From: Klebsormidium nitens
Lineage: Eukaryota; Plantae; Klebsormidiophyceae
Length of the DNA stretch: 64,000 nt
Direction of reading: 5' to 3'
Assembly (NCBI GenBank): GCA_000708835.1
Contig: DF237163.1
Location: 12,673 to 76,672, forward strand
Below are positions 1,246 through 13,200 of the stretch, piece after piece. A model generated the notes under the pieces. It did no database searches. It had not been told where the DNA came from and saw nothing but the letters and a program-made list of their open reading frames with translations. The first letter of the stretch is position 1, and the number at the start of each line of letters is the position of its first letter. Position numbers and translations under genes: made by a program.

Positions 1246-3356
1246 TTATTTGAAGGTCTGGAGACGCACATTGTAACAAACACGCAGCCTGTCGATCCAG
1301 TGTCACCATGTCAGGACTACCTACCGTAGACATTTCTAGCCAAGTAGCATTGGTAGGTTTTGTGGAGTTGAGAGGTATTGGGGAAGGAGCGGACGTGGTG
1401 TCTTGCCTGTGGCACCAAGTGTCGGGAATGCCGTGTGCAGTTCATCCCTGATATTACAGTGGGGACATTCTGCTTACAACGACAAACTTCAAGGGGAGCT
1501 GAAATTACTGAAGAAGATTGAGGTAAGCTCCAACGATGCATCGCATGGCTGGTCACATTGTGACCTCTGCTTCATCGGGGCGCCCCATTTTGAGTAAGAG
1601 AAGATTACATCATCAGGCTGGAGAAGCAAGATAGGCAATTAGCTTTGCTGGCGCTAGACAATTCAGTTAGTGGGAACAACGGCGAAAAGTGAACTCTAGG
1701 ACCAATGGTGTATTACAAGTTTCACAAGGATTGTTGAGTGGAGCCCGACACTAATTTTGTGATGCCAATTGGGCATGTTAATAAATGGAGTAGCTGAGCT
1801 CAAGAAATGTACCTACTATCTCTCCGCACGTGTAGTTTGCTTCTCCTAGGCCTCCAACAAGGAGTTCAGACACACAGAGCCAGCAAATCAACCGAAACTG
1901 GTTTGGATTGTGAAGAAGATACTGAGCAACCTTACAGATTCCACAAGGCTTGCTTTCTAAAGCAATTCTGGATCAGCCGCACTCGCATTACTGCTTCGAT
2001 GGGCCTGAAGCTTTCCTCCCAGCTCTCAGATCAGGCTTCAATCTTTCATTTTCTCAGCTTAGGTGACAAATATGGGGCTGGCACTTGTTGCAGTTTGCAA
2101 GGACAACTTATTTACGGTAGTATCTGAAATCCAATCTGCTGGAAGGTGCTTACCACAAGGACAAGTTGATTGGACAGCGCATTAAGTGGACGCCAATGCC
2201 AGTAATCTTGATTCTGTTTCCCGCTTGTGAAGTCTAGGGCGTTGTTACAGATACCATTTGTCTAAGGAAGCAGGGTCAAGCCCAATGACTTAAGGATAGC
2301 AAGCTTCTGCTTTGGTGGACCCTTGTTTACTGTGACCATACTGTCAACACATCATAAGGGCAGCGGTGCTCTATTCTCGCTGGTGTCCTTTGATTTTGAT
2401 TATCCTTGCACAAAAGAGGTGCTTTCGGAGACTATATCAATGCTTGCAGGGCTTCTTGGAAGTGTATAGCTCAACGACGTGCATCTACCACTTTTGATCT
2501 AACCTTAGTCGCTCTACACAGCAAAGAAGTTGCTTTTACCACTTCTGATCTATCGCTGGGCAATCTGCAGAGCTCTGCGGGCAAGATATAGAGGGATTTT
2601 CATTTGGCGGAGCACAACCGAGTGAGAGAGCATTGTCAATATTTCCACCAACCGAGCTCCATAAGCAAGGTAAAACTTCTGGCGCTACTCAATTCAACTC
2701 TACTTAGGTTATGCTGCCAATATTGGCCAGACTATTGTGTATGGGAGTCAAAACTTCTTGTACAACACAGAAAGTTCCTCAGGAAAGTTTGCCACGAAGA
2801 ACGCACAGGACTACCCGTTGTAGTGGAGATGCCCAATTTCTTGTAGGATTTTCCCGGTAGTGTTTTTGTCTAGAGTGGGTGTTTGTCAAAGAGTAGCTGG
2901 CTCTGGCACAAGCTCGCTGATATATTCTGAGGTCCTGTCCCTTTTGGCTCGAGTCGATATACTGCTCTGTAAAGCAGCTGACCAATCACCTCAGATGGTT
3001 GAATCATAACAAGCCGATACATCTTTTAACCACCAGACTTGGTCCGTCCTGCATTAGAGCCTTTTTCCTGCATCAGAAATAGTCTGGAACTCAACGGGGT
3101 GTACTACCTGGATAACAACGTCATGCCTTATAGTGCCTCAAAAAGATTGAGCGTAAAACGTTGGTGTCCCGATTGGTCTCTCCGCTTCTGTCCAGCCACT
3201 CACAGTGGAAAAGCCGTTCCAAAAGGGGTACAATCGTGTAGCCGCTGTCGACGTCCTGCGCTTTATGAAGTATGTTAAAAGCTCTGTCTCAGAGCCTTTG
3301 GCACCAAGTACTGCTTGTATGCCAAGTTCGTGTGTGTGCTGTGCAGATTTCGTTGT

Positions 3357-6300
3357 ATGGCCAATGCTATGGCCGTACAGCGCAATATGGTTGTCCTACT
3401 GGCTATCCTTCTGGGCTCCTTGTATGGCGCAAGTGCTTTTACGATGGACGAGCTTGCCAAGGAGGTCAAGGGGAGCCTCTACAACCAGACGCAAATCATC
3501 TCATCCAGTGGTTACCTACGTGGGGAGATACCTGCAGAAGTGGGACGCTTGACAAACCTCACCGAACTTAGTCTTGATTACCAAGGCCTCACAGGCCCCA
3601 TTCCCCCCGAGCTCGGAAACCTGGTAAACCTTGTTTCACTCAGCCTTAAGGTGAACAAGTTAACCGGACCCATTCCTTCCAACCTGGGCAGCTTGTCGCG
3701 GCTGGTCGAGCTTGACTTATCCGACAACCTTCTAGAGGGCCCCATTCCCCCCAGCCTCGGCAACCTCTCTCGCCTCAGAACCGTCGATTTACGCTTCAAC
3801 CAGTTCAATGCCCCTATTCCCCCCGAATTCGGACGCCTCTCGAGCTTAGAAAACCTTTGCATCAGTTCCACCCAGCTCATTGGCAACATCCCCGCTGAGC
3901 TCGGGGCCTTGTCGAACCTCACCACTCTTGCTCTGCACCGCAACCAGCTCGTCGGCCGTGTCCCTCCCAAACTCGGGAGACTGGCGAACCTTACTGAAAT
4001 GAGTCTCAGGCTCAACCAGCTCGTCGGCCCTATTCCACCGGAGCTGGGTCGCCTTTCCAAGCTCTCTACTTTGTCCCTCTCGTCTAACAACCTCTCCGGC
4101 TCCATCCCCCCCCAGGTCGGCGACCTGACAAACCTGCGAACCCTCAACTTTGAAAACAATAGTCTCTCCGGGGAGATTCCTCCAGAGTTGGGTCGCCTTT
4201 CCAAGCTCTATACTTTGTCCCTCTCGTCCAACAACCTCTCCGGCTTCATCCCCCCCCAGTTCGGCAATCTGACAAACCTGGGATACCTCAGCTTTGCAAA
4301 TAATAGTCTCTCCGGGGAGATTCCTCCAGAGATGGGGAACATGAGGAACCTTTATTTTCTCGACCTTGCAAACAACTTCCTTTCAGGAGCGATACCCACC
4401 TCTCTTGGCCAGTTGACCTCCCTTGGCGTCCTTAACCTTGTCAACAACAGCCTTTCTGGCCCTCTGCCTTCAGAGCTCGGGAACCTTCGCTTCCTCCAAA
4501 ACCTTCTCTTGGCCAATAACAGCCTTTCCGGCCCCATCCCCTCTGAGTACTCCAAGTTCCAAAATTTGAAGCAGCTTTTCCTCAGTCACAATAGCCTCTC
4601 TGGGCACTTGCCTATAGCGCTTGGGAGCTCCGCAAATCTCAGATATATAGGCCTGAGCTGGAACAACCTATCGGGCCCCATTCCTCCCGAGTATGGCGAT
4701 CTGTTCGAAACCCTGTATTACCTTGGTCTCAACAACAACAACCTGTCGGGCACGATCCCCGCCAATCTTGACTACCTGTTTAACTGCAAGGTTGACTTCT
4801 CCAATAATCCGGGGCTGAGTGGCCCAATCCGACCTCTGCTGCTCCAAGTCCGAGAGCAGAATGCCAGCAATATCATGGGCACCAACTTAACGGTGCCTGT
4901 GGCCTCTTGCATCTCTCTCTCTGACTTTGCGGCCCTGACACAGCTCACTGCCCTGTCGTTGTCAAAACGCAACATCTGTGGCACTATCCCCCCGGAGATG
5001 GGCAATCTAACCCGCCTGACGGAGCTTGACCTGTTCAACAACAACCTGACGGGACCCATTCCCCCTGAACTCGGCAAGCTGACTCTCTTAACTGAGATCA
5101 ACCTCGGCTTCAACAACTTGTCCGGTCCCATCCCCACCGAGTTTGGCAACCTCAAAAACCTGACCTACCTGTATCTCTATTTCAACAAACTCAATGGCAG
5201 TATCCCGCCGTCTCTTGGCGACCTGTCGGGGTTGCGTATCCTTGATTTCTACGGCAACAACCTTACCGGTCGCATCCCGCCCGAATTCGGCAGGCTATCC
5301 GAGCTAAGATTCCTTCGCTTGGGAAGTAACCGGCTGACCGGTGGCATCCCTCGCGAAATCGGCAACCTTAGCACCAGCCTGTCACTCTTGGATCTGGAGA
5401 ACAACCTCCTCTCGGGCCCAATTCCCCCGGAGATTAGCGGCTGCCGTTTCCTCGGATACTTTGACCTCGCCAACAATAGCTTCTTCGGCGCATTCCCCCC
5501 CGAGATCGCGGCAAAACCAGGCCTCGTACGCCTCAACCTCTCCTTCAACGCCTTTTCGGGTCCCATTCCCCCCGGGCTAGACAACCAGACCGGCCTAACC
5601 CTTGTGGATCTTCACAGCAACCAATTCACGGGTTCCATCTCCCCTGGCCTCGGCAACGTTCTCTCCCTCGAAACACTAGACCTTCACGACAACAACCTTT
5701 CAGGCCCCATCCCCCCATCCCTCGGCAAGCTAACGGGCTTGACCCTGCTCGATCTCTCCAACAACAGCTTCCTTGCTGGCGCGGTCCCCCCCGAACTAGG
5801 CCGCCTGACGTGGCTCACAGGTCTGGACGTTTCTCTCACCAACGTGTCCGGCCCCGTTCCGCCGGAACTCGGTAACTTGGCCGGAAACATGACGTCACTC
5901 GGGATCCCGGGGCCCTTGCCCCCGTGGCTGGTGTCCTTTAGTAACCTGACGTTCCTGAGGTCGGCGTCTCCTGCTGACGTGGCGGCAGGGGGTTGGCTGG
6001 ACGTGTCTGCCGCTCCAGCGAACTGCCAGTTCATCCGGTGGACGGGAGGCGCGGTGACTGACGTCACGTTCTGGGACGCGTGCACGGGCGGGAACGGGTG
6101 TGTGGTCGACCTTACGGACACCGGATCTAAATTGTCTCAGAGGGCAAAACGCGAGGTGAGCTGGCCGTAACAGCGTACGGACTGATACTTGACAAGTCGA
6201 ATACATAGCTGCAGAGACAAGGGTGTCGATCTCAAGACTTGGCGGGTTGGATTGACAAAAGCCTGCCAGCTTTTAGCAATGGCCGATGGGGGGTAACAAC

Positions 6301-8886
6301 TTGAAGGCTCGTGGAGCCCATACGCTTTGATTTTTGCTTGCACTCAGGTGGTCGGGAGTTCGTTTACAGATGTCAAGCTCATACAATCGACAAGCGTGCC
6401 ATTTCAAGATCGCCATACTGGGTTGAGTACTTTGTCCTGCTTCAGAAAATGAAGCGGTCTAGCCTTGCTTGCCTTTTGTCCTTTTGCATGCTTCTTCAAT
6501 TTGTATCGGTGCTTCCAGTCGGAGCCGACTTTGGATAACGATTCTGTCCATCTTCGATTGTCAACAGAAAGCGAAAAGAGCTTGTACAAAGAGCTCGTGC
6601 CCTGCAAGAGGTCAGTGTCAATTGCAGGGTAAAGGACTCATAATTTTGATTCCTCGTCCTTCCGTCAACCGAAAAAGGAGGATTGTTTGGTTCCGGCCTT
6701 CGTCTCTTGCTAACCCCTGTGTCTGGATTACTCTGACAGTGATGCATTCCCCGGGGAACGAAGCGCTTCGTGACAAAGATAAAGAATCCTGAATGAAACG
6801 CTTTGCGACAAAGATAGAGACTCCTGGACAGAGCTACGAAGTCGGTGAATAAAGTGATAAACTGACAAACGGACCCTATGTCCCCTTTCAGCTGCCTTGC
6901 GGATCAGTCACGCGACTGATCCATTTGTAGCCACTTAAACTCTTTCTCGATTGTGATTCAGAAACAACAGACTACTTGGTCAGGGGTTTGGGTTGGCTCG
7001 CAAGTTCGTCTACTGGCCAAGTTCAGTGCTTGGAGACCATTTCGTCATTCGAGATGGTCCAGATGCCGTCTGGCGGGGGAAGTTGGTCAATTCGATTTAC
7101 CTTTTTGCCACGGCTTTCTGATCTGAACGCGTCTCCCGTATGCAGATCTGCCTTGGCAAGATCTCCGTCTTCCTCGAGGGCGATGCGCCTTCGGTGGTGC
7201 GCGAAACCTTCAACAAAGAGGGCAACCAGACTGGCGTATACACTTCCTACTATCTGCGCAACAAGCGCGGCATATATTTCCTCAACGACACAGGCTTTAT
7301 TGACAGGATCGACCTCGGGCCCGGGGGCGCCGCCTATACCGGGGTGGGTTTCACCCGAGTTCAGGAGGGCAACCTTTGTGGAAACCCGGAGGCGCCCGAA
7401 GTGGTGGCCGTTGTGTACGGCGTCTTCGTCGGCCTCCTGCTGGGTTCCACGATAACCCTTGTGATAACCCTCCGTTGCCGGAAGGGGCGTGAAAAGAACG
7501 AGAAGGGCAACCGGTTTCTTTTCACGTTGGCATCCTATGCTTGGGGTATCGTTAGTGGGGTGATTCCGTGGGTGGACCTGTATACGGACATCACGGTGTT
7601 GGCTCAAGTGTGGGGGGCTTGGCCGATGTGGGTTATCCTGGTGTCGGTGTTGTCGCCTTACGCGGTGGCAGGGTACTACGGCGCGAGAGATGCGGTTAGG
7701 TGAGGTTGAGGACGGCAGCAGCTATGGAAAGCCGGTGCATGTCGGATTGTGAGGGATGTTACGGATTAAGCTTACGCTTGCTGATTGAAGAGCCTGCTTC
7801 TGCCTTTGTGCCCTTGTGACGTCCCGCTAGAGTTTTCACTTTGTTCAGCTCAGGTGTCTAGTGCTCAGCGGCCCGAGAGCGGCCTTCGTAATTCCTGTTG
7901 AGTCCCCCCATGCGACTGAATCAGTCTAAAGTCGAGGCCGAAAATCTCGCACGACGTCAAGATCTTGTCGCGGTCATGTGAGGCATCAGCCGGACATTTC
8001 ACGTGGGGGAAGGGATCCAAAATCTCTTTCTTCGTTTCCAGGAGAACCCGCTTTGAAAGGGCTTTGAAACCTTCAAATGAGACGACCGATCCTCGACCGA
8101 TTCTTGCTGTCGTCCAAAGCGCTTGGTCCCTCTCAGGATAGGACTCGAAACGGGATTGATGCTCGTCATCGTTTGACAAGCGCTGGTCCGTGACTTCTCA
8201 AACCCAGGTGGTCCCTCCGTTTGTCAAAGCGCAAACCCACTATGCCTCCAAATGCAACACATGAACATGTCTCCCTCACCCTTCCCAGGTTCCTCCCGTG
8301 GCGGCCGTTTCGTGGGTTCCGTCGCTTCTTCCCCCCGCCGGACGAAGCCAGCCTGACCCCCCTTCCTCGCGGGCCGGCCCGTTGGGACCAGCGCATCCTG
8401 GCACTTTGCGCGTGGCCTATCGCCACCGTTTGCGTTCCGGTCGGAGACGTCGTGGGGGCGCTCGGGAGAGTGGGTTTCTGCCCGGTGGTGGGCAATCGGG
8501 GCTACAGCCTGGAGTTTTACCTCCAGTCGCGGCTCATGCTGGAGCTGCTTCTCGAGTCTCTGCCCCAGGCGGTCTTCCAGACCACGCTGTATCTGCTAGG
8601 CAGCTCCCGCGCAACGCGGATCTACATCGACGAGCCGATCTTCGTGCGGTCTATCGGCATCTCGCTTGTTAGCATCCTCTTCCAGTACTGCTCGACGCTC
8701 TATGAATCAATGGCGGAACGGCAGCCGTTCTGGCGCTGCTTTTGGCGGCGGGTGCGGCTCGGCGCGGGGCCCTGTCTAATTGTTGCGCCGCCTAAAAGCA
8801 CGGGCGACGATTTTGAGAAGCTGGGACCGGAGGCGAACGATCTGTTGGGAAAGCCGGAAGTCGTTGCTGCAGGTCCGGGATGCTGA
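3357..8886 (+). CDS. LRR receptor-like membrane protein: signal peptide, ~32 plant-type LRRs with an island, Cys/beta-rich juxtamembrane region, TM helix, and XK(Xkr)-related multipass module; no kinase (~1316 aa, 3 exons)
   Basis: Exons 3357-6155 (GAG|gtgagc, phase 0), 7146-7699 (tgcag|ATC ... AG|gtgagg) and 8289-8886 (cttcccag|G) join in frame. LxxLxxLxLxxNxLsGxIP repeats; signal peptide MVVLLAILLGSLYGASA; TM VVAVVYGVFVGLLLGSTITLVITL; motifs WVDLYTDI and LELLLESLPQAVFQ. Confidence 0.85.
4041..4330 (+). repeat. Recent 144-bp (two-LRR) tandem duplication within the LRR exon
   Basis: gggtcgcctttccaagctct...aatagtctctccggggagattcctccagag occurs twice at 144-bp spacing with few substitutions. 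Confidence 0.85.
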
Positions 8887-9049
8887 ATCTGGAGCGGTTG
8901 CACACTGCCTCCGGTGACCCGTTCCGTAAGTACATTGAGCCTCCCGGGCAGACGCAACTACCTGTGGCTCGGGGTGTTAATACAGCGTTCGCTTTGTCGC
9001 CGCAGTCTTATAGTACTAGATGATAGCCTCCATGGACGGGTTGCCTTGG

Positions 9050-9800
9050 CACACAAATAGTGCATTTCTAGCTGTATTTCCTGTCGACTAAATATACATA
9101 TTGATTTGTGCGTAGTCTAGTACTAAGCAATTGAAAATGTTAGACAATGATCTTGGTCGACTATGATCTTGCATGTGAGCGGCCGGCATACAACCAATGT
9201 GGCATACGTACAGAGCACAAACTTCAACAATTCTCATGTTGCACGATGTACATCCGTAGCATGAGCGGCCCGTTTGACTTTGATATGCATGCCGCGGCAC
9301 AGGCGGCGCCGCGGCGGACGCTGCAGCCACGTGATTGTCGATCAAGTCCCCTCTATATTTGATTTGAGACGTACAATACGCTTGCATGTGTTTGAAGTCA
9401 TGCCGGCCGCCTGCTTAGCAAAGATTGGACAATAGAATATGCCTCGACATGTATACGGGAATGAATCAAACATGCACCTCAATGATGCAATTCATTGAAA
9501 TATGCATCTTCAGGTTTCACTGCTACAACTTGCATGAAGCTAGTCAATTGCCAGCTAGTCACGCTCCAACTCACAGTACGTATGTATATGGATATCCTCA
9601 GTCAGTCGCCGCCGCTTCATGTAGCACTCAGCAATTGTAAAGCTAATTAAGATTCAGACGCACTGCAATCGAAGCTGTACGTGTAGCGTTGCGGCCGGGC
9701 CATAGGCGTTTAACTCACTGCAATCTGCAGCATATGGGCCGCGCAACTCCAAGTGATCACACACGTACTATATAGCCGTCAGAGTCAACCAAAACTCTCA
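9050..9800. repeat. Palindrome-rich dispersed intergenic repeat, copy 1 (inverted relative to the ~30.1 kb and ~44.0 kb copies)
   Basis: gtgagcggccggcatacaaccaatgt (~9175) matches the reverse complement of ~44355-44390; tgtttgaagtcatgccggccgcc (~9390) matches the reverse complement of ~44005-44040. Confidence 0.45.
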
Positions 9801-10262: not shown

Positions 10263-13200
10263 TTACGATCCCTTCACCTCAGCCAACGCCTCCCTTGTAG
10301 CCATCCCGATGACTTCGTTGGTGGCATTGGGTAGATAGTAGTACTTGCCTGCACGATGGAATGTGTCGATGAGAACCTGTCTGGGAGCAGCTCTTTCAGG
10401 TCAAGCGTCAGGACCAAAGAATCTGGGTGAGGTGCCAGATGAGATCCCTCCGTCCCCAAACCTTCTCGCAAGCTATAGCCAATCTTGGAGTTGCTATAAT
10501 GGATTAGGAATTGGAGATCATTTCCTCAGAATCTTAAACGTCTCAACGAGGAAAGTACAGCTTTTGTATAAACTTTGAACCCTACCTTCAAACCCCTTCT
10601 CAAGACCCTGTGCCGCTAGCAGTAACAATTACTTCTGAATAGCCGAAGCGTATTAACGGCATGCCGCGGTGTGCATGTACAATGGGAGTGTTTTTCGACA
10701 GTCAATCGGAGCCCTCCAAGGCTGTGGACCCATACTCGACACCGCTATTGGAAAAAGCGAATTCCGCCAGATAACTAAGCAGAGTAGTGGGTCGAAGGCT
10801 TACCTTGAGCAACCCGGGCAATCTCTTTGGCAAACCCGGTCGACACAAACTTGTTCTCCGTGTCAATCACCAGCAGTGAATGGCCGGACAGGTACACCTT
10901 CGCGGCGATCCCCAGGATCTCCTCCTGCACATCACAATAGCATGATTTTCAACAACTGTCGCTCTCCTGCGCAACATTTTATACTGTTTATTTCTGCATT
11001 CCCCTGAGTCTGCATTTCCGTTTCTAGGGCGTTGCGAGCCAGTACGAACGGCCCTGCTGGACGGCCGAAGAAGTGTTTGCTTGAGGCTGAATTATAAGCG
11101 GCTAAAGTGCAAGTCCCTCTGCTGTTTTTGTTCGATGTCAATCACGCTGATTCTGTGTCCCGTTGCTATAAGACTCCTACAAGGGCCACGTGGTCACGGA
11201 TTAAGAGCCAAGTGAATCCGGCAGTATCGGGCGTTACTGGGAGACTTTTTTGGAGGCAAGCTTAAAGGGGTGCTCTCGAAACGACAAAATCGTTCCCCAT
11301 AGCAACAAGCAGATACTTGTTTCACTTGGCAATTTCCTGTGCCCAGGCCTTTACGGCATTTCAACGACATCTAACTTCGGTATGCATCCAAGCACAACGT
11401 CAGCACTGTATAGGGCGAAGTTCTCTTCTGCGCTTTCAAGCTGGTCTTCTGCCGGCCGACATCGACTCAACTTCCTCCTAGATTTCTTCATAGATGACCA
11501 GGCTTCCAGCTTACGTCAATGCGGGGATTTTCCTTCTACAGCTGTAAGAGCGATAAAACCAAATCATCTGAACTGAGTCTCACCTTCAGTTCTGCCTGGC
11601 TGGGCCGCGGAGCATCGGGCCCGATAAACCCTTCTTCGCCGAGCGACCGCTTGAGCGGGATGTTGGCCCGACCGTCCGTGAGAACAACAATCATGACACG
11701 TCCGACGTCCCCGCTGGACTGCGCGTTGATGCCCACACGGACCGCCTGGAGAGAAAGCGGAGTCACAGAACGGTGAGAGGGGCTAGTAGGTCCGATCAAA
11801 AGTCCAATACCCAAGTAACAACTTTCTCTGGTTAAGATGAGAAAAGAGCCCAGACTTGGCTTTTTGACAACAGCTGTCACACGCGCCAGGCGAAATGTGC
11901 TAGAACGTAGACTAATTCTAGCGGAGCCGACTTCGGCGACCAGCGCAATGAGACCCCCTTCTGACCGTCAACCGTCTTCCCTCTCGGAACACGGAAAACA
12001 AACACTAACCAACTAGGCAATCTGCTTTTTGCCACGTCGTTTTAAGTGGGACTTGTTCAAAAGAAGTGCAAGGCACAAAGTGGAAGGCAGGGTGAATGGG
12101 AAGGGGGGCGCACCGTGGTCAGGCCGTGGGCCAGGGGCGATCCCCCTCCGCAGGGCAGCCTGTCGAGACGCTTCCTGGCCATGGCGATGGATCGAGAGGG
12201 GGGCAGCAGAACTTCGGCGGCTTCCCCCCGGAAAGGAATGATGGCGACCTGTGGGAGAATTGTTGGCTTGCATTTACATTCACCCTAGTCAACGAGTTCC
12301 TGCCCATTCCCCAGTCCGTAGTGAAAGAGAAGGCGCAACCGCAACGGTGGGCCAAACGCTGCTGCTTTCATCTCGCGGCTTTTTGTTTCGTTCCGCTTCC
12401 GCTCCAGTGCACTGAGAGAAGCAATACCCATCGTTGCACCCCGATCCGGAGGTGCACACAGACCTCAGACACGCTACACTATATGGTACTCAAGTACTGC
12501 ATTCAGGAATTTGCAACAGAATAAGGAGGACGAACGCAGGGTTGAGAGCACTGGTTTGGAACGCTGCTCACCTGGTCTCGGCTCTGGTAGCTCTCGTTGA
12601 GCAGCTGCAGGGCGGCGCCCTTGGCGTTGTTCATGCGGTTCAGGGCCATACTGCCACTGGCGTCCACGACGAAGATGACCTGGCAGAAATGTAATTCGAC
12701 CGTTGGGACTAGGACGAAACAGTCCGGCCCTGAAACCCTGAAACCCTGAAGGCCTACAACCGACCGTTGGGATCTTTACACAAGCTGCTGCACGAAGCGC
12801 CGAGCCCCAAGCCAGTTCTCTGTTTCGCTGGCTCAATGTGCCCCCTCGTAACAGGTGATTGTAGTCCCTGTCTAGGAAAACCGGCGATTGCAAATCGGCC
12901 CTGGGCGCTACGGATTGCGTCCTGCAGCATCTCTGAATTCCTACCATTCACAACAGTTGACCGACATGCGCAGTCGAAGCTGTGGAAAACAGACACGTCA
13001 AAAGCTTCTCCAAAAGTCGGACATGCACACGCGGCTTTGCAATTCGGAAATTGCTCACGGGTTGTCAGAGTCCTAAATCGGCCGCTTCGTTTCAGCATAC
13101 ACCACTGGGCTTGTTGGACGGGCAGCCATGAGTAGGCTGAACTTTTGGTGCATTCATAACAGTACACACTGCGACGTCTTTTCACTACGAAGCGGGACGC

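Follow-up and report, generated by a model that had tools for sequence, protein, structure and literature searches.

Here we describe a gene of the alga Klebsormidium nitens (Klebsormidiophyceae) that joins a plant-type leucine-rich repeat (LRR) ectodomain to a multipass membrane module, which, judged from models of its relatives, is very probably homologous, if remotely, to the N-terminal repeat (ND) of the XK-related proteins (XK, Xkr4/8/9, CED-8). The gene lies at positions 3357–8886, on the forward strand, of a 64,000-nucleotide stretch of contig DF237163.1 (assembly GCA_000708835.1, contig positions 12,673 to 76,672), which we call the window and whose coordinates are used throughout. It is one intact, transcribed gene of three exons, and its product is a type-I-like surface protein of 1316 residues, in which the LRR ectodomain is followed by an additional transmembrane (TM) helix, here TM0, and by a four-TM module with a re-entrant helix. 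A multigene family keeps this architecture of LRRs, TM0 and module. By Pfam's own criterion the module is not a member of PF09815, the XK-related family, and the case for kinship is built from structure, embedding, profile and motif evidence.

A single transcribed gene

An open frame of 951 codons (3315–6170) in the list of open reading frames (ORFs) holds the ATG at 3357, the first in-frame ATG downstream of an in-frame stop at 3276–3278. The first junction (donor GAG/GTGAGC after 6155, acceptor TGCAG/ATC at 7146) is in phase 0 and the second (donor TTAG/GTGAGG after 7699, acceptor CCCAG/G at 8289) in phase 2, and the spliced coding sequence, 3357–6155 + 7146–7699 + 8289–8886, encodes 1316 residues with one terminal stop. 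Transcript evidence came from public Logan RNA contigs of four runs, and contigs from two related organisms span all three exons: X1 record 2 (1867 nt, 0 mismatches) covers 5529–6153, 7144–7697 and 8287–8974, and X9 record 20 (3373 nt, from a close relative in which about 3–7% of the letters differ, depending on the exon) covers 4216–6153, 7144–7697 and 8287–9114. Both introns are GT..AG in the RNA contigs. Because single RNA contigs span exons 1–3, the LRR exon and the membrane exons belong to one mRNA, and because the transcript stops about 90–230 nt past the stop codon at 8884–8886, there are no coding exons beyond exon 3. A preliminary description of this stretch, made from the sequence alone, had read the same two in-frame junctions; the peptides that it quoted are present in the frames it gave, the RNA contigs confirm its splicing, and the outcome that it named as fatal, separate genes for the LRR and membrane parts, did not occur. 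The parts of the transcription unit, all on the + strand, are as follows.

3357–6155, +: exon 1 (ORF, Pfam LRR_1, periodicity, sequons, RNA contigs X1 records 1 and 2 and X9 record 20)
6156–7145, +: intron 1, 990 nt, GT..AG (joint 6153->7144, cut +2, X1 and X9 contigs)
6308–6421, +: minor alternative exon within intron 1, joined to 7146 (X2 record 6, joint 6420->7145, cut +1, depth 4.9)
7146–7699, +: exon 2, phase 2 at its end (translation, family alignment A2, RNA contigs)
7700–8288, +: intron 2, 589 nt, GT..AG (joint 7697->8287, cut +2, all four runs)
8289–8886, +: exon 3, stop at 8884–8886 (translation, AlphaFold (AF2) secondary structure of homologues, residue conservation)
8887–9114, +: 3' untranslated region (UTR), approximate end (contig ends at 8974 in X1, 9085 in X2 and 9114 in X9)

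Some features of the transcripts stand apart from this model. The 6308–6421 segment has a frame that is open into exon 2 and contains no ATG, and X2 contigs also cover 6445–6695 of intron 1; the segment may represent a cassette exon or an alternative first exon, or be left over from pre-mRNA. X1 record 1 (3569 nt, depth 31 versus 8.9 for the 3' contig) extends 1632 nt upstream of 3200, to window position 1568, and its leader would hold out-of-frame ATGs at 3265 and 3272. Either the 5' UTR is very long and contains upstream ORFs, or the contig has merged this transcript with that of a neighbour. In the X9 transcript (organism B) one base is missing at 5162, within the LRR exon, which may reflect a frameshift or an error of assembly. 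Relative to the window this transcript has 41 differences over the 554 positions of exon 2, compared with 57 over about 1940 positions of the LRR part, the membrane exon being the more diverged.

Architecture and topology of the product

The predicted signal peptide, MANAMAVQRNMVVLLAILLGSLYGASA, comprises residues 1–27 (3357–3437). All Pfam content of exon 1 belongs to LRR families (LRR_1, E 6.9e-83, 25 stretches), and a 24-residue periodicity resolves two blocks of plant-type LRRs, at about residues 68–480 and 533–830, with a spacer of about 50 residues between them. The signal peptide and plant-type LRRs of the preliminary description hold, its count of about 32 repeats being replaced by one of about 29–31 from the periodicity. 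The protein carries 33 N-glycosylation sequons (NxS/T). From residue 934 onwards it is laid out as follows, with the predicted side of the membrane.

7146–7400, +, from residue 934: juxtamembrane domain, about 85 residues, with two conserved Cys (ICLGK..., NLCGNPEA); outside
7401–7472, +, residues 1019–1042: TM0; crossing
7473–7514, +, residues 1043–1056: basic loop RCRKGREKNEKGNR; cytosol
7515–7613, +: XK-like TM1 with DLYTD (residues 1077–1081; 7575–7589); crossing
between TM1 and TM2: short turn WGAWP; outside
7623–7688, +: TM2; crossing
start of exon 3: Arg/Pro-rich loop; cytosol
8395–8463, +, residues 1154–1176: hydrophobic helix ILALCAWPIATVCVPVGDVVGAL at the IH1 position; re-entrant
8464–8532, +, residues about 1177–1199: conserved predicted beta-hairpin; cytosol
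8533–8601, +, residues 1199–1221: TM3 LMLELLLESLPQAVFQTTLYLLG, with the ELLLESLPQ motif (8542–8568); crossing
between TM3 and TM4: 12-residue loop; outside
8638–8703, +, residues 1235–1256: TM4; crossing
after TM4 to the stop at 8884–8886, +: tail, about 60 residues, basic then acidic; cytosol

Charge distribution (a positive-inside pattern) and hydropathy fit an N-terminus outside and a C-terminus inside, as they do the earlier suggestion that the extra helix, TM0, puts the LRRs outside with TM1 still entering the membrane from the cytosol. The hairpin just before TM3 is predicted in both of the AF2 models of homologues introduced below (pLDDT about 78–85). The product is not an LRR receptor-like kinase (LRR-RLK), no kinase family having been found in Pfam scans of the window pieces and of 22 family members; nor is it a receptor-like protein (RLP), defined by a single TM helix and a short tail, as TM0 is followed by four more TM helices and a re-entrant helix.

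Likeness to the XK-related proteins

The XKR fold consists of two related repeats (ND and CD), each of four TM helices and a partly inserted helix, and is marked by a PQL kink in a hydrophilic TM3 and by conserved acidic residues on TM1 and TM3, ‘a characteristic feature’ (PMC8298096). In hXkr4 the residues D125, D129 and E313 (D26, D30 and E141 in hXkr8) form a negative intramembrane surface, and the mutants D125N, D129N and E313Q differ significantly from wild type in a reconstituted scrambling assay (PMC12334663), which confirms as functionally relevant the Xkr8 residues on which the preliminary description had drawn. The window protein has both hallmarks, the acidic TM1 and TM3 residues and the P–Q kink, in D1077-x3-D1081 (DLYTD) on TM1 and E1203-x3-E1207-x2-P1210-Q1211 (ELLLESLPQ) on TM3, its equivalence to the Xkr residues being set by motif and helix order rather than by residue alignment. 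Across the family P1210 is conserved in 31 of 32 members, Q1211 in 29 of 32 and E1203 in 21 of 32, and the TM1 aspartates in 75–80% (D1077 15/20; D1081 16/20). Positions in and around the hairpin rank with the best conserved (a Gly; R1198, 31/33; Y1194, 27/33).

The closest structural neighbours are also XK-related. AlphaFold models of two homologues, P0020:399–780 (model 1; pLDDT 77.7, pTM 0.74) and P0036:263–502 (model 2; pLDDT 81.0, pTM 0.75), were compared with 48,161 PDB chain representatives by VIA-align, an aligner independent of Foldseek, with the following results for XKR chains.

rXKR9, 7p16_A: model 1, Z 10.3, rank 1; model 2, Z 11.5, rank 1
hXkr4, 9boj_B: model 1, Z 9.5, rank 2; model 2, Z 9.4, rank 2
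hXKR8, 8xej_X: model 1, Z 8.3, rank 4; model 2, Z 8.8, rank 3

The comparison with Xkr8 and Xkr9 structures proposed in the preliminary description thus places XKR9, XKR4 and XKR8 within the first four ranks for both models; the next unrelated chain for model 2 scores Z 7.4. The XKR matches cover XKR9 residues 3/4–190, that is the ND, with 150–170 residues aligned, and both homologue models show the ND fold (TM1–TM2, IH1, TM3–TM4). With Foldseek, Swiss-Prot yields XKR7 (probability 0.92) and XKR6 (0.87), and the AFDB clusters yield two Klebsormidium family members first and then mostly XK-related proteins (probability 0.85–1.0), some of them of 200–265 residues. Against the PDB, Foldseek places XKR8 at ranks 2–3 for model 2, at E 0.87, and returns for model 1 only bestrophin noise (TM-score 0.11); a shape search of the ESM-Atlas returned unrelated rows, with TM-scores below 0.3. 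Of the 100 named ESM-Atlas clusters nearest in embedding, 83 contain PF09815, the closest being proteins of about 200 residues, and a search with the embedding of the window's exon 3 gave a weaker lead to XK-related proteins.

The Pfam profile points the same way in relatives of the window protein, for three of which PF09815 is the top or only match, each time within the first half of the profile, which spans 337 positions.

P0036: PF09815 E 2.3e-4, 20.7 bits, profile positions 3–174
P0030 (K. nitens GAQ93027.1): PF09815 E 2.6e-3, 17.2 bits, profile positions 4–190
P0034: PF09815 E 7.2e-3, 15.8 bits, profile positions 33–162

The profile comparison suggested in the preliminary description gave sub-threshold matches for these relatives and none for the pieces of the window itself. 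A phmmer search of PDB sequences with each exon product and with the P0036 module found only noise (PsaE, Integrator 6, lectins). Pfam matches of exon 2 to heliorhodopsin, FAM176 and TctA (E 0.02–0.5) were rejected as noise from TM composition. Structure, profile and embedding point to XK and to no other family, and the XK/Xkr-like module of the preliminary description stands, reduced to the N-terminal repeat (TM1-TM2-IH1-TM3-TM4).

A family in Klebsormidium and Botryococcus

When the exon 3 product was compared by phmmer with 1.84 billion cluster representatives, 42 proteins were found, 33 of them at E <= 1e-10, the match lying at the C-terminus in the long members (530–1130 residues). LRR domains were detected by Pfam in 13 of the 22 longer members and a kinase in none of them. 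The whole 383-residue product of exons 2 and 3 is collinear, across the exon 2/3 junction, with P0020, P0005, P0023 and P0021 at 38–44% identity, and in alignment A2 the juxtamembrane domain, TM0, the basic linker and the module are all conserved.

Named members are confined to Klebsormidium nitens, K. subtile and Botryococcus braunii (two proteins in the last), and the window protein is 38–54% identical to its nearest named Klebsormidium relatives. The K. nitens members are GAQ78274.1, GAQ78170.1, GAQ78110.1, GAQ93027.1, GAQ84842.1, GAQ81339.1, GAQ80901.1, GAQ92577.1, GAQ92877.1, KFL_000030580 and the UniProt entries A0A1Y1HPT3 and A0A1Y1IIR6. The remaining members are unnamed proteins from JGI metagenomes or Logan, and no land-plant name occurred among the subset of hits that was looked up. 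Many short members are probably single exons called as genes, as exemplified by P0001, which is exon 3 of the metagenomic locus L001. No match to residues 835–933, at the juxtamembrane end of exon 1, came out of a word-index search; since this missed even the window's own protein, the window gene is absent from the protein collection. A tblastn search of the rest of the window gave no further copy of either the LRR gene or the module.

Three further observations concern individual members. GAQ78274.1, GAQ78170.1 and A0A1Y1HPT3 bear the public name ‘LRR receptor-like serine/threonine-protein kinase FLS2’ though they lack a kinase; the label is wrong because the annotation was transferred from the LRR part alone. 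L001:2664–8270 (JGI metagenome 3300060285, Ga0590115_0007050) is a three-exon orthologue with 80–85% protein identity and the same splice sites, and is frame-shifted, in that exon 2 carries a +1 indel for which a change in the length of exon 3 compensates, leaving about 190 codons out of frame; it is either a pseudogene or an assembly error. In P0013 (K. nitens GAQ92577.1) Sel1 repeats (Pfam E 5e-18) lie C-terminal to the XK-like module, so that in at least one case the module is joined to a cytosolic domain for protein interaction.

In the remainder of the window (9000–64000) the ten largest other ORFs match no Pfam family. The GC content falls to about 46–50% outside the exons.

Comparison with known systems

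The algal module shares with the XK-related proteins of PF09815, its best structural and embedding neighbours, the ND fold, the DxxxD on TM1, the ExxxExxPQ kink on TM3 and the entry of TM1 from the cytosol. It differs in being a single repeat of about 220 residues, compared with about 340 in XK-related proteins; moreover the algal protein adds an extra TM helix and a 1000-residue LRR ectodomain upstream, has neither caspase site nor C-terminal plug helix, and belongs to green algae rather than animals. Closer in size are the short XK-related domain proteins of protists, fungi and invertebrates (about 195–265 residues), which are stand-alone single-repeat modules, form the nearest embedding clusters (score 0.88–0.90) and include the Foldseek matches A0A015M975, A0A397ITA1 and A0A5K4FEL0. 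Unlike the algal protein they have no ectodomain and no extra TM helix, and they are uncharacterised gene models as listed in databases.

With plant LRR-RLKs and RLPs such as FLS2 the protein has in common a signal peptide, a long array of 24-residue LRRs, many sequons, a single TM helix and a basic stop-transfer sequence. It departs from the former in lacking a kinase domain, from the latter in that a four-TM XK-like module replaces the short tail, and from both in its family-specific, Cys-containing juxtamembrane domain. A further parallel lies in the animal pairs, basigin/neuroplastin with Xkr8 and Kell with XK, where an XK-family protein is physically coupled to a glycoprotein that crosses the membrane once and bears a large ectodomain. 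Kell is attached to XK in this way, and PDB titles name an XKR8–basigin complex. Whereas the animal pairs consist of two polypeptides, disulfide-linked or non-covalent, and have an Ig or peptidase ectodomain, the algal protein is one chain with an LRR ectodomain; by analogy, its layout mirrors theirs as a fused, in-cis counterpart.

Possible modes of action

On balance we favour the reading that this is an LRR receptor with an XK-ND-like module whose output is a membrane change, exerted through paired half-XK units or through a hairpin partner. The LRR ectodomain would sense an extracellular ligand or a surface, and the output would be a change in the membrane instead of phosphorylation. An XK fold comprises two repeats, of which the ND supplies half, and single-repeat XK-like proteins exist elsewhere; we therefore propose that two receptors may pair and so rebuild an XK-like unit of eight helices, perhaps under the control of ligand binding. 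Within such a unit the buried acidic cluster would cause thinning of the bilayer and scrambling of phospholipids, as has been proposed for Xkr4. Alternatively or additionally, the cytosolic beta-hairpin may be presented to a partner, for example a bridge-like lipid-transfer protein of the VPS13 type. In XK/XKR2 a beta-hairpin within cytosolic loop 2 binds VPS13A at its PH domain (PMC9436381), and we raise this option because the conserved predicted hairpin before TM3 sits at the corresponding place. A scramblase or ‘ligand-gated’ function for the LRR–XK-like receptor is purely conjectural.

A number of results weigh against this reading. Neither the exon 2 nor the exon 3 product of the window matches PF09815 even at E 10, and none of P0036, P0030 and P0034 reaches its gathering score of 24.8 bits; hmmsearch with profiles A2 and A3 gave 0 matches among PDB sequences at E 10, and thus no XKR, and the same profiles recovered from a 5.8-billion database family members only, none annotated with PF09815. 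The modelled structures are those of homologues and not of the window protein (identity to the window module is 44% for P0020 and about 29% for P0036), the VIA Z scores fall within the range that the tool flags as attainable by helical bundles, and the Foldseek E-values to XKRs are non-significant (0.008–0.9, TM-score 0.3–0.45). There is one repeat only, the second (CD) repeat being absent and about 60 codons following TM4. The E1207 column, equivalent to Xkr8 E141 and Xkr4 E313, holds 14 Glu and 14 Arg, the window being of the Glu type, a charge reversal that suggests two functional subtypes. Lastly, scrambling in vitro was not seen with purified Xkr8 and Xkr9, and Xkr4 monomers are active (PMC12334663), so that gating by dimer formation is a proposal without direct precedent.

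Part of this evidence would suit a true XK-ND homologue that is no scramblase, and that serves instead as a multipass anchor and docking platform, to which a VPS13-like lipid-transfer protein, a co-receptor or a cation would bind, with RLP-like signalling through partners. The functions of the XK family differ or are unknown, and purified Xkr8/9 are inactive; XK recruits VPS13A via its loop-2 beta-hairpin, and the algal hairpin region and its flanks are highly conserved; and half of the members have Arg at the E1207 position. We consider such a platform unlikely, though deserving of serious attention, in that the window copy keeps all three acidic residues with which Xkr4 mutants were assayed for scrambling, no docking partner is known, and the hairpin is an AF2 prediction with pLDDT about 78–85. 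It is improbable that the module is an unrelated four-helix membrane bundle, with the DxxxD and ExxxExxPQ motifs and the likeness in fold due to convergence or chance. Such a bundle would agree with the lack of any above-threshold sequence match to the XK family, and with Z scores of 8–11 in the caution zone for helical folds, where Piezo repeats, pannexins and soluble four-helix bundles come in at Z 6–8; it would leave unexplained that all three XKR cluster representatives are top-ranked of 48,161 chains with two independent models, that PF09815 is the sole family recovered by three different members, collinearly and in the same profile half, that 83% of embedding neighbours are XK-related and that the motifs coincide with the hallmark positions on TM1 and TM3.

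The frame-shifted exons 2 and 3 of the metagenomic orthologue, together with the alternative exon within intron 1 seen in one run, might be taken to mean that 3357–6170 and 7146–8886 are separate genes, or that this is a dead pseudogene, the apparent fusion arising artefactually from the reading frames. Single RNA contigs, however, join exons 1–3 at canonical splice sites in two organisms, the spliced frame is open for 1316 codons, the orthologue keeps the splice sites, and a matching architecture is annotated in proteins of K. nitens. This explanation has next to no probability, and for the window copy it is refuted by the RNA contigs that span the junctions.

Significance

In the full-text literature we found no paper on an LRR plus XK-related design in algae or on XK-related proteins in Klebsormidium, and PF09815 was mentioned, in the literature found, by one ocean-metaproteome preprint. 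The earlier statement that no LRR–XK receptor has been described in the green lineage agrees with this as regards papers, but the proteins themselves were already public under wrong or uninformative names. What is new is the recognition of the LRR plus half-XK design, the sequences from Klebsormidium and Botryococcus having been available before. The family also exposes a database problem, in that its Klebsormidium members are named ‘FLS2’ or ‘hypothetical’ and the module goes undetected by Pfam.

For scramblase biology the family would offer a natural single-repeat XK module that combines the acidic cluster, the role of which is still debated, with a regulatory handle. The most far-reaching form of the idea makes the family a class of green-algal receptors that work independently of kinases as lipid scramblases under ligand control: binding at the ectodomain would pair two half-XK modules into an active XK-like unit, so that local lipid asymmetry collapses or a bridge-like lipid-transfer protein is fed, and the proteins would be living representatives of the single-repeat ancestor of the animal XK/Xkr fold; this we think rather unlikely. 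The interest of the finding lies chiefly in the case that a lipid-scrambling output is true. The known LRR receptors of the plant lineage signal, to our knowledge, via a kinase or kinase partners. If an LRR ectodomain is here wired straight to an XK-type lipid-handling module, it would represent a different output logic, in streptophyte algae near the origin of land plants.

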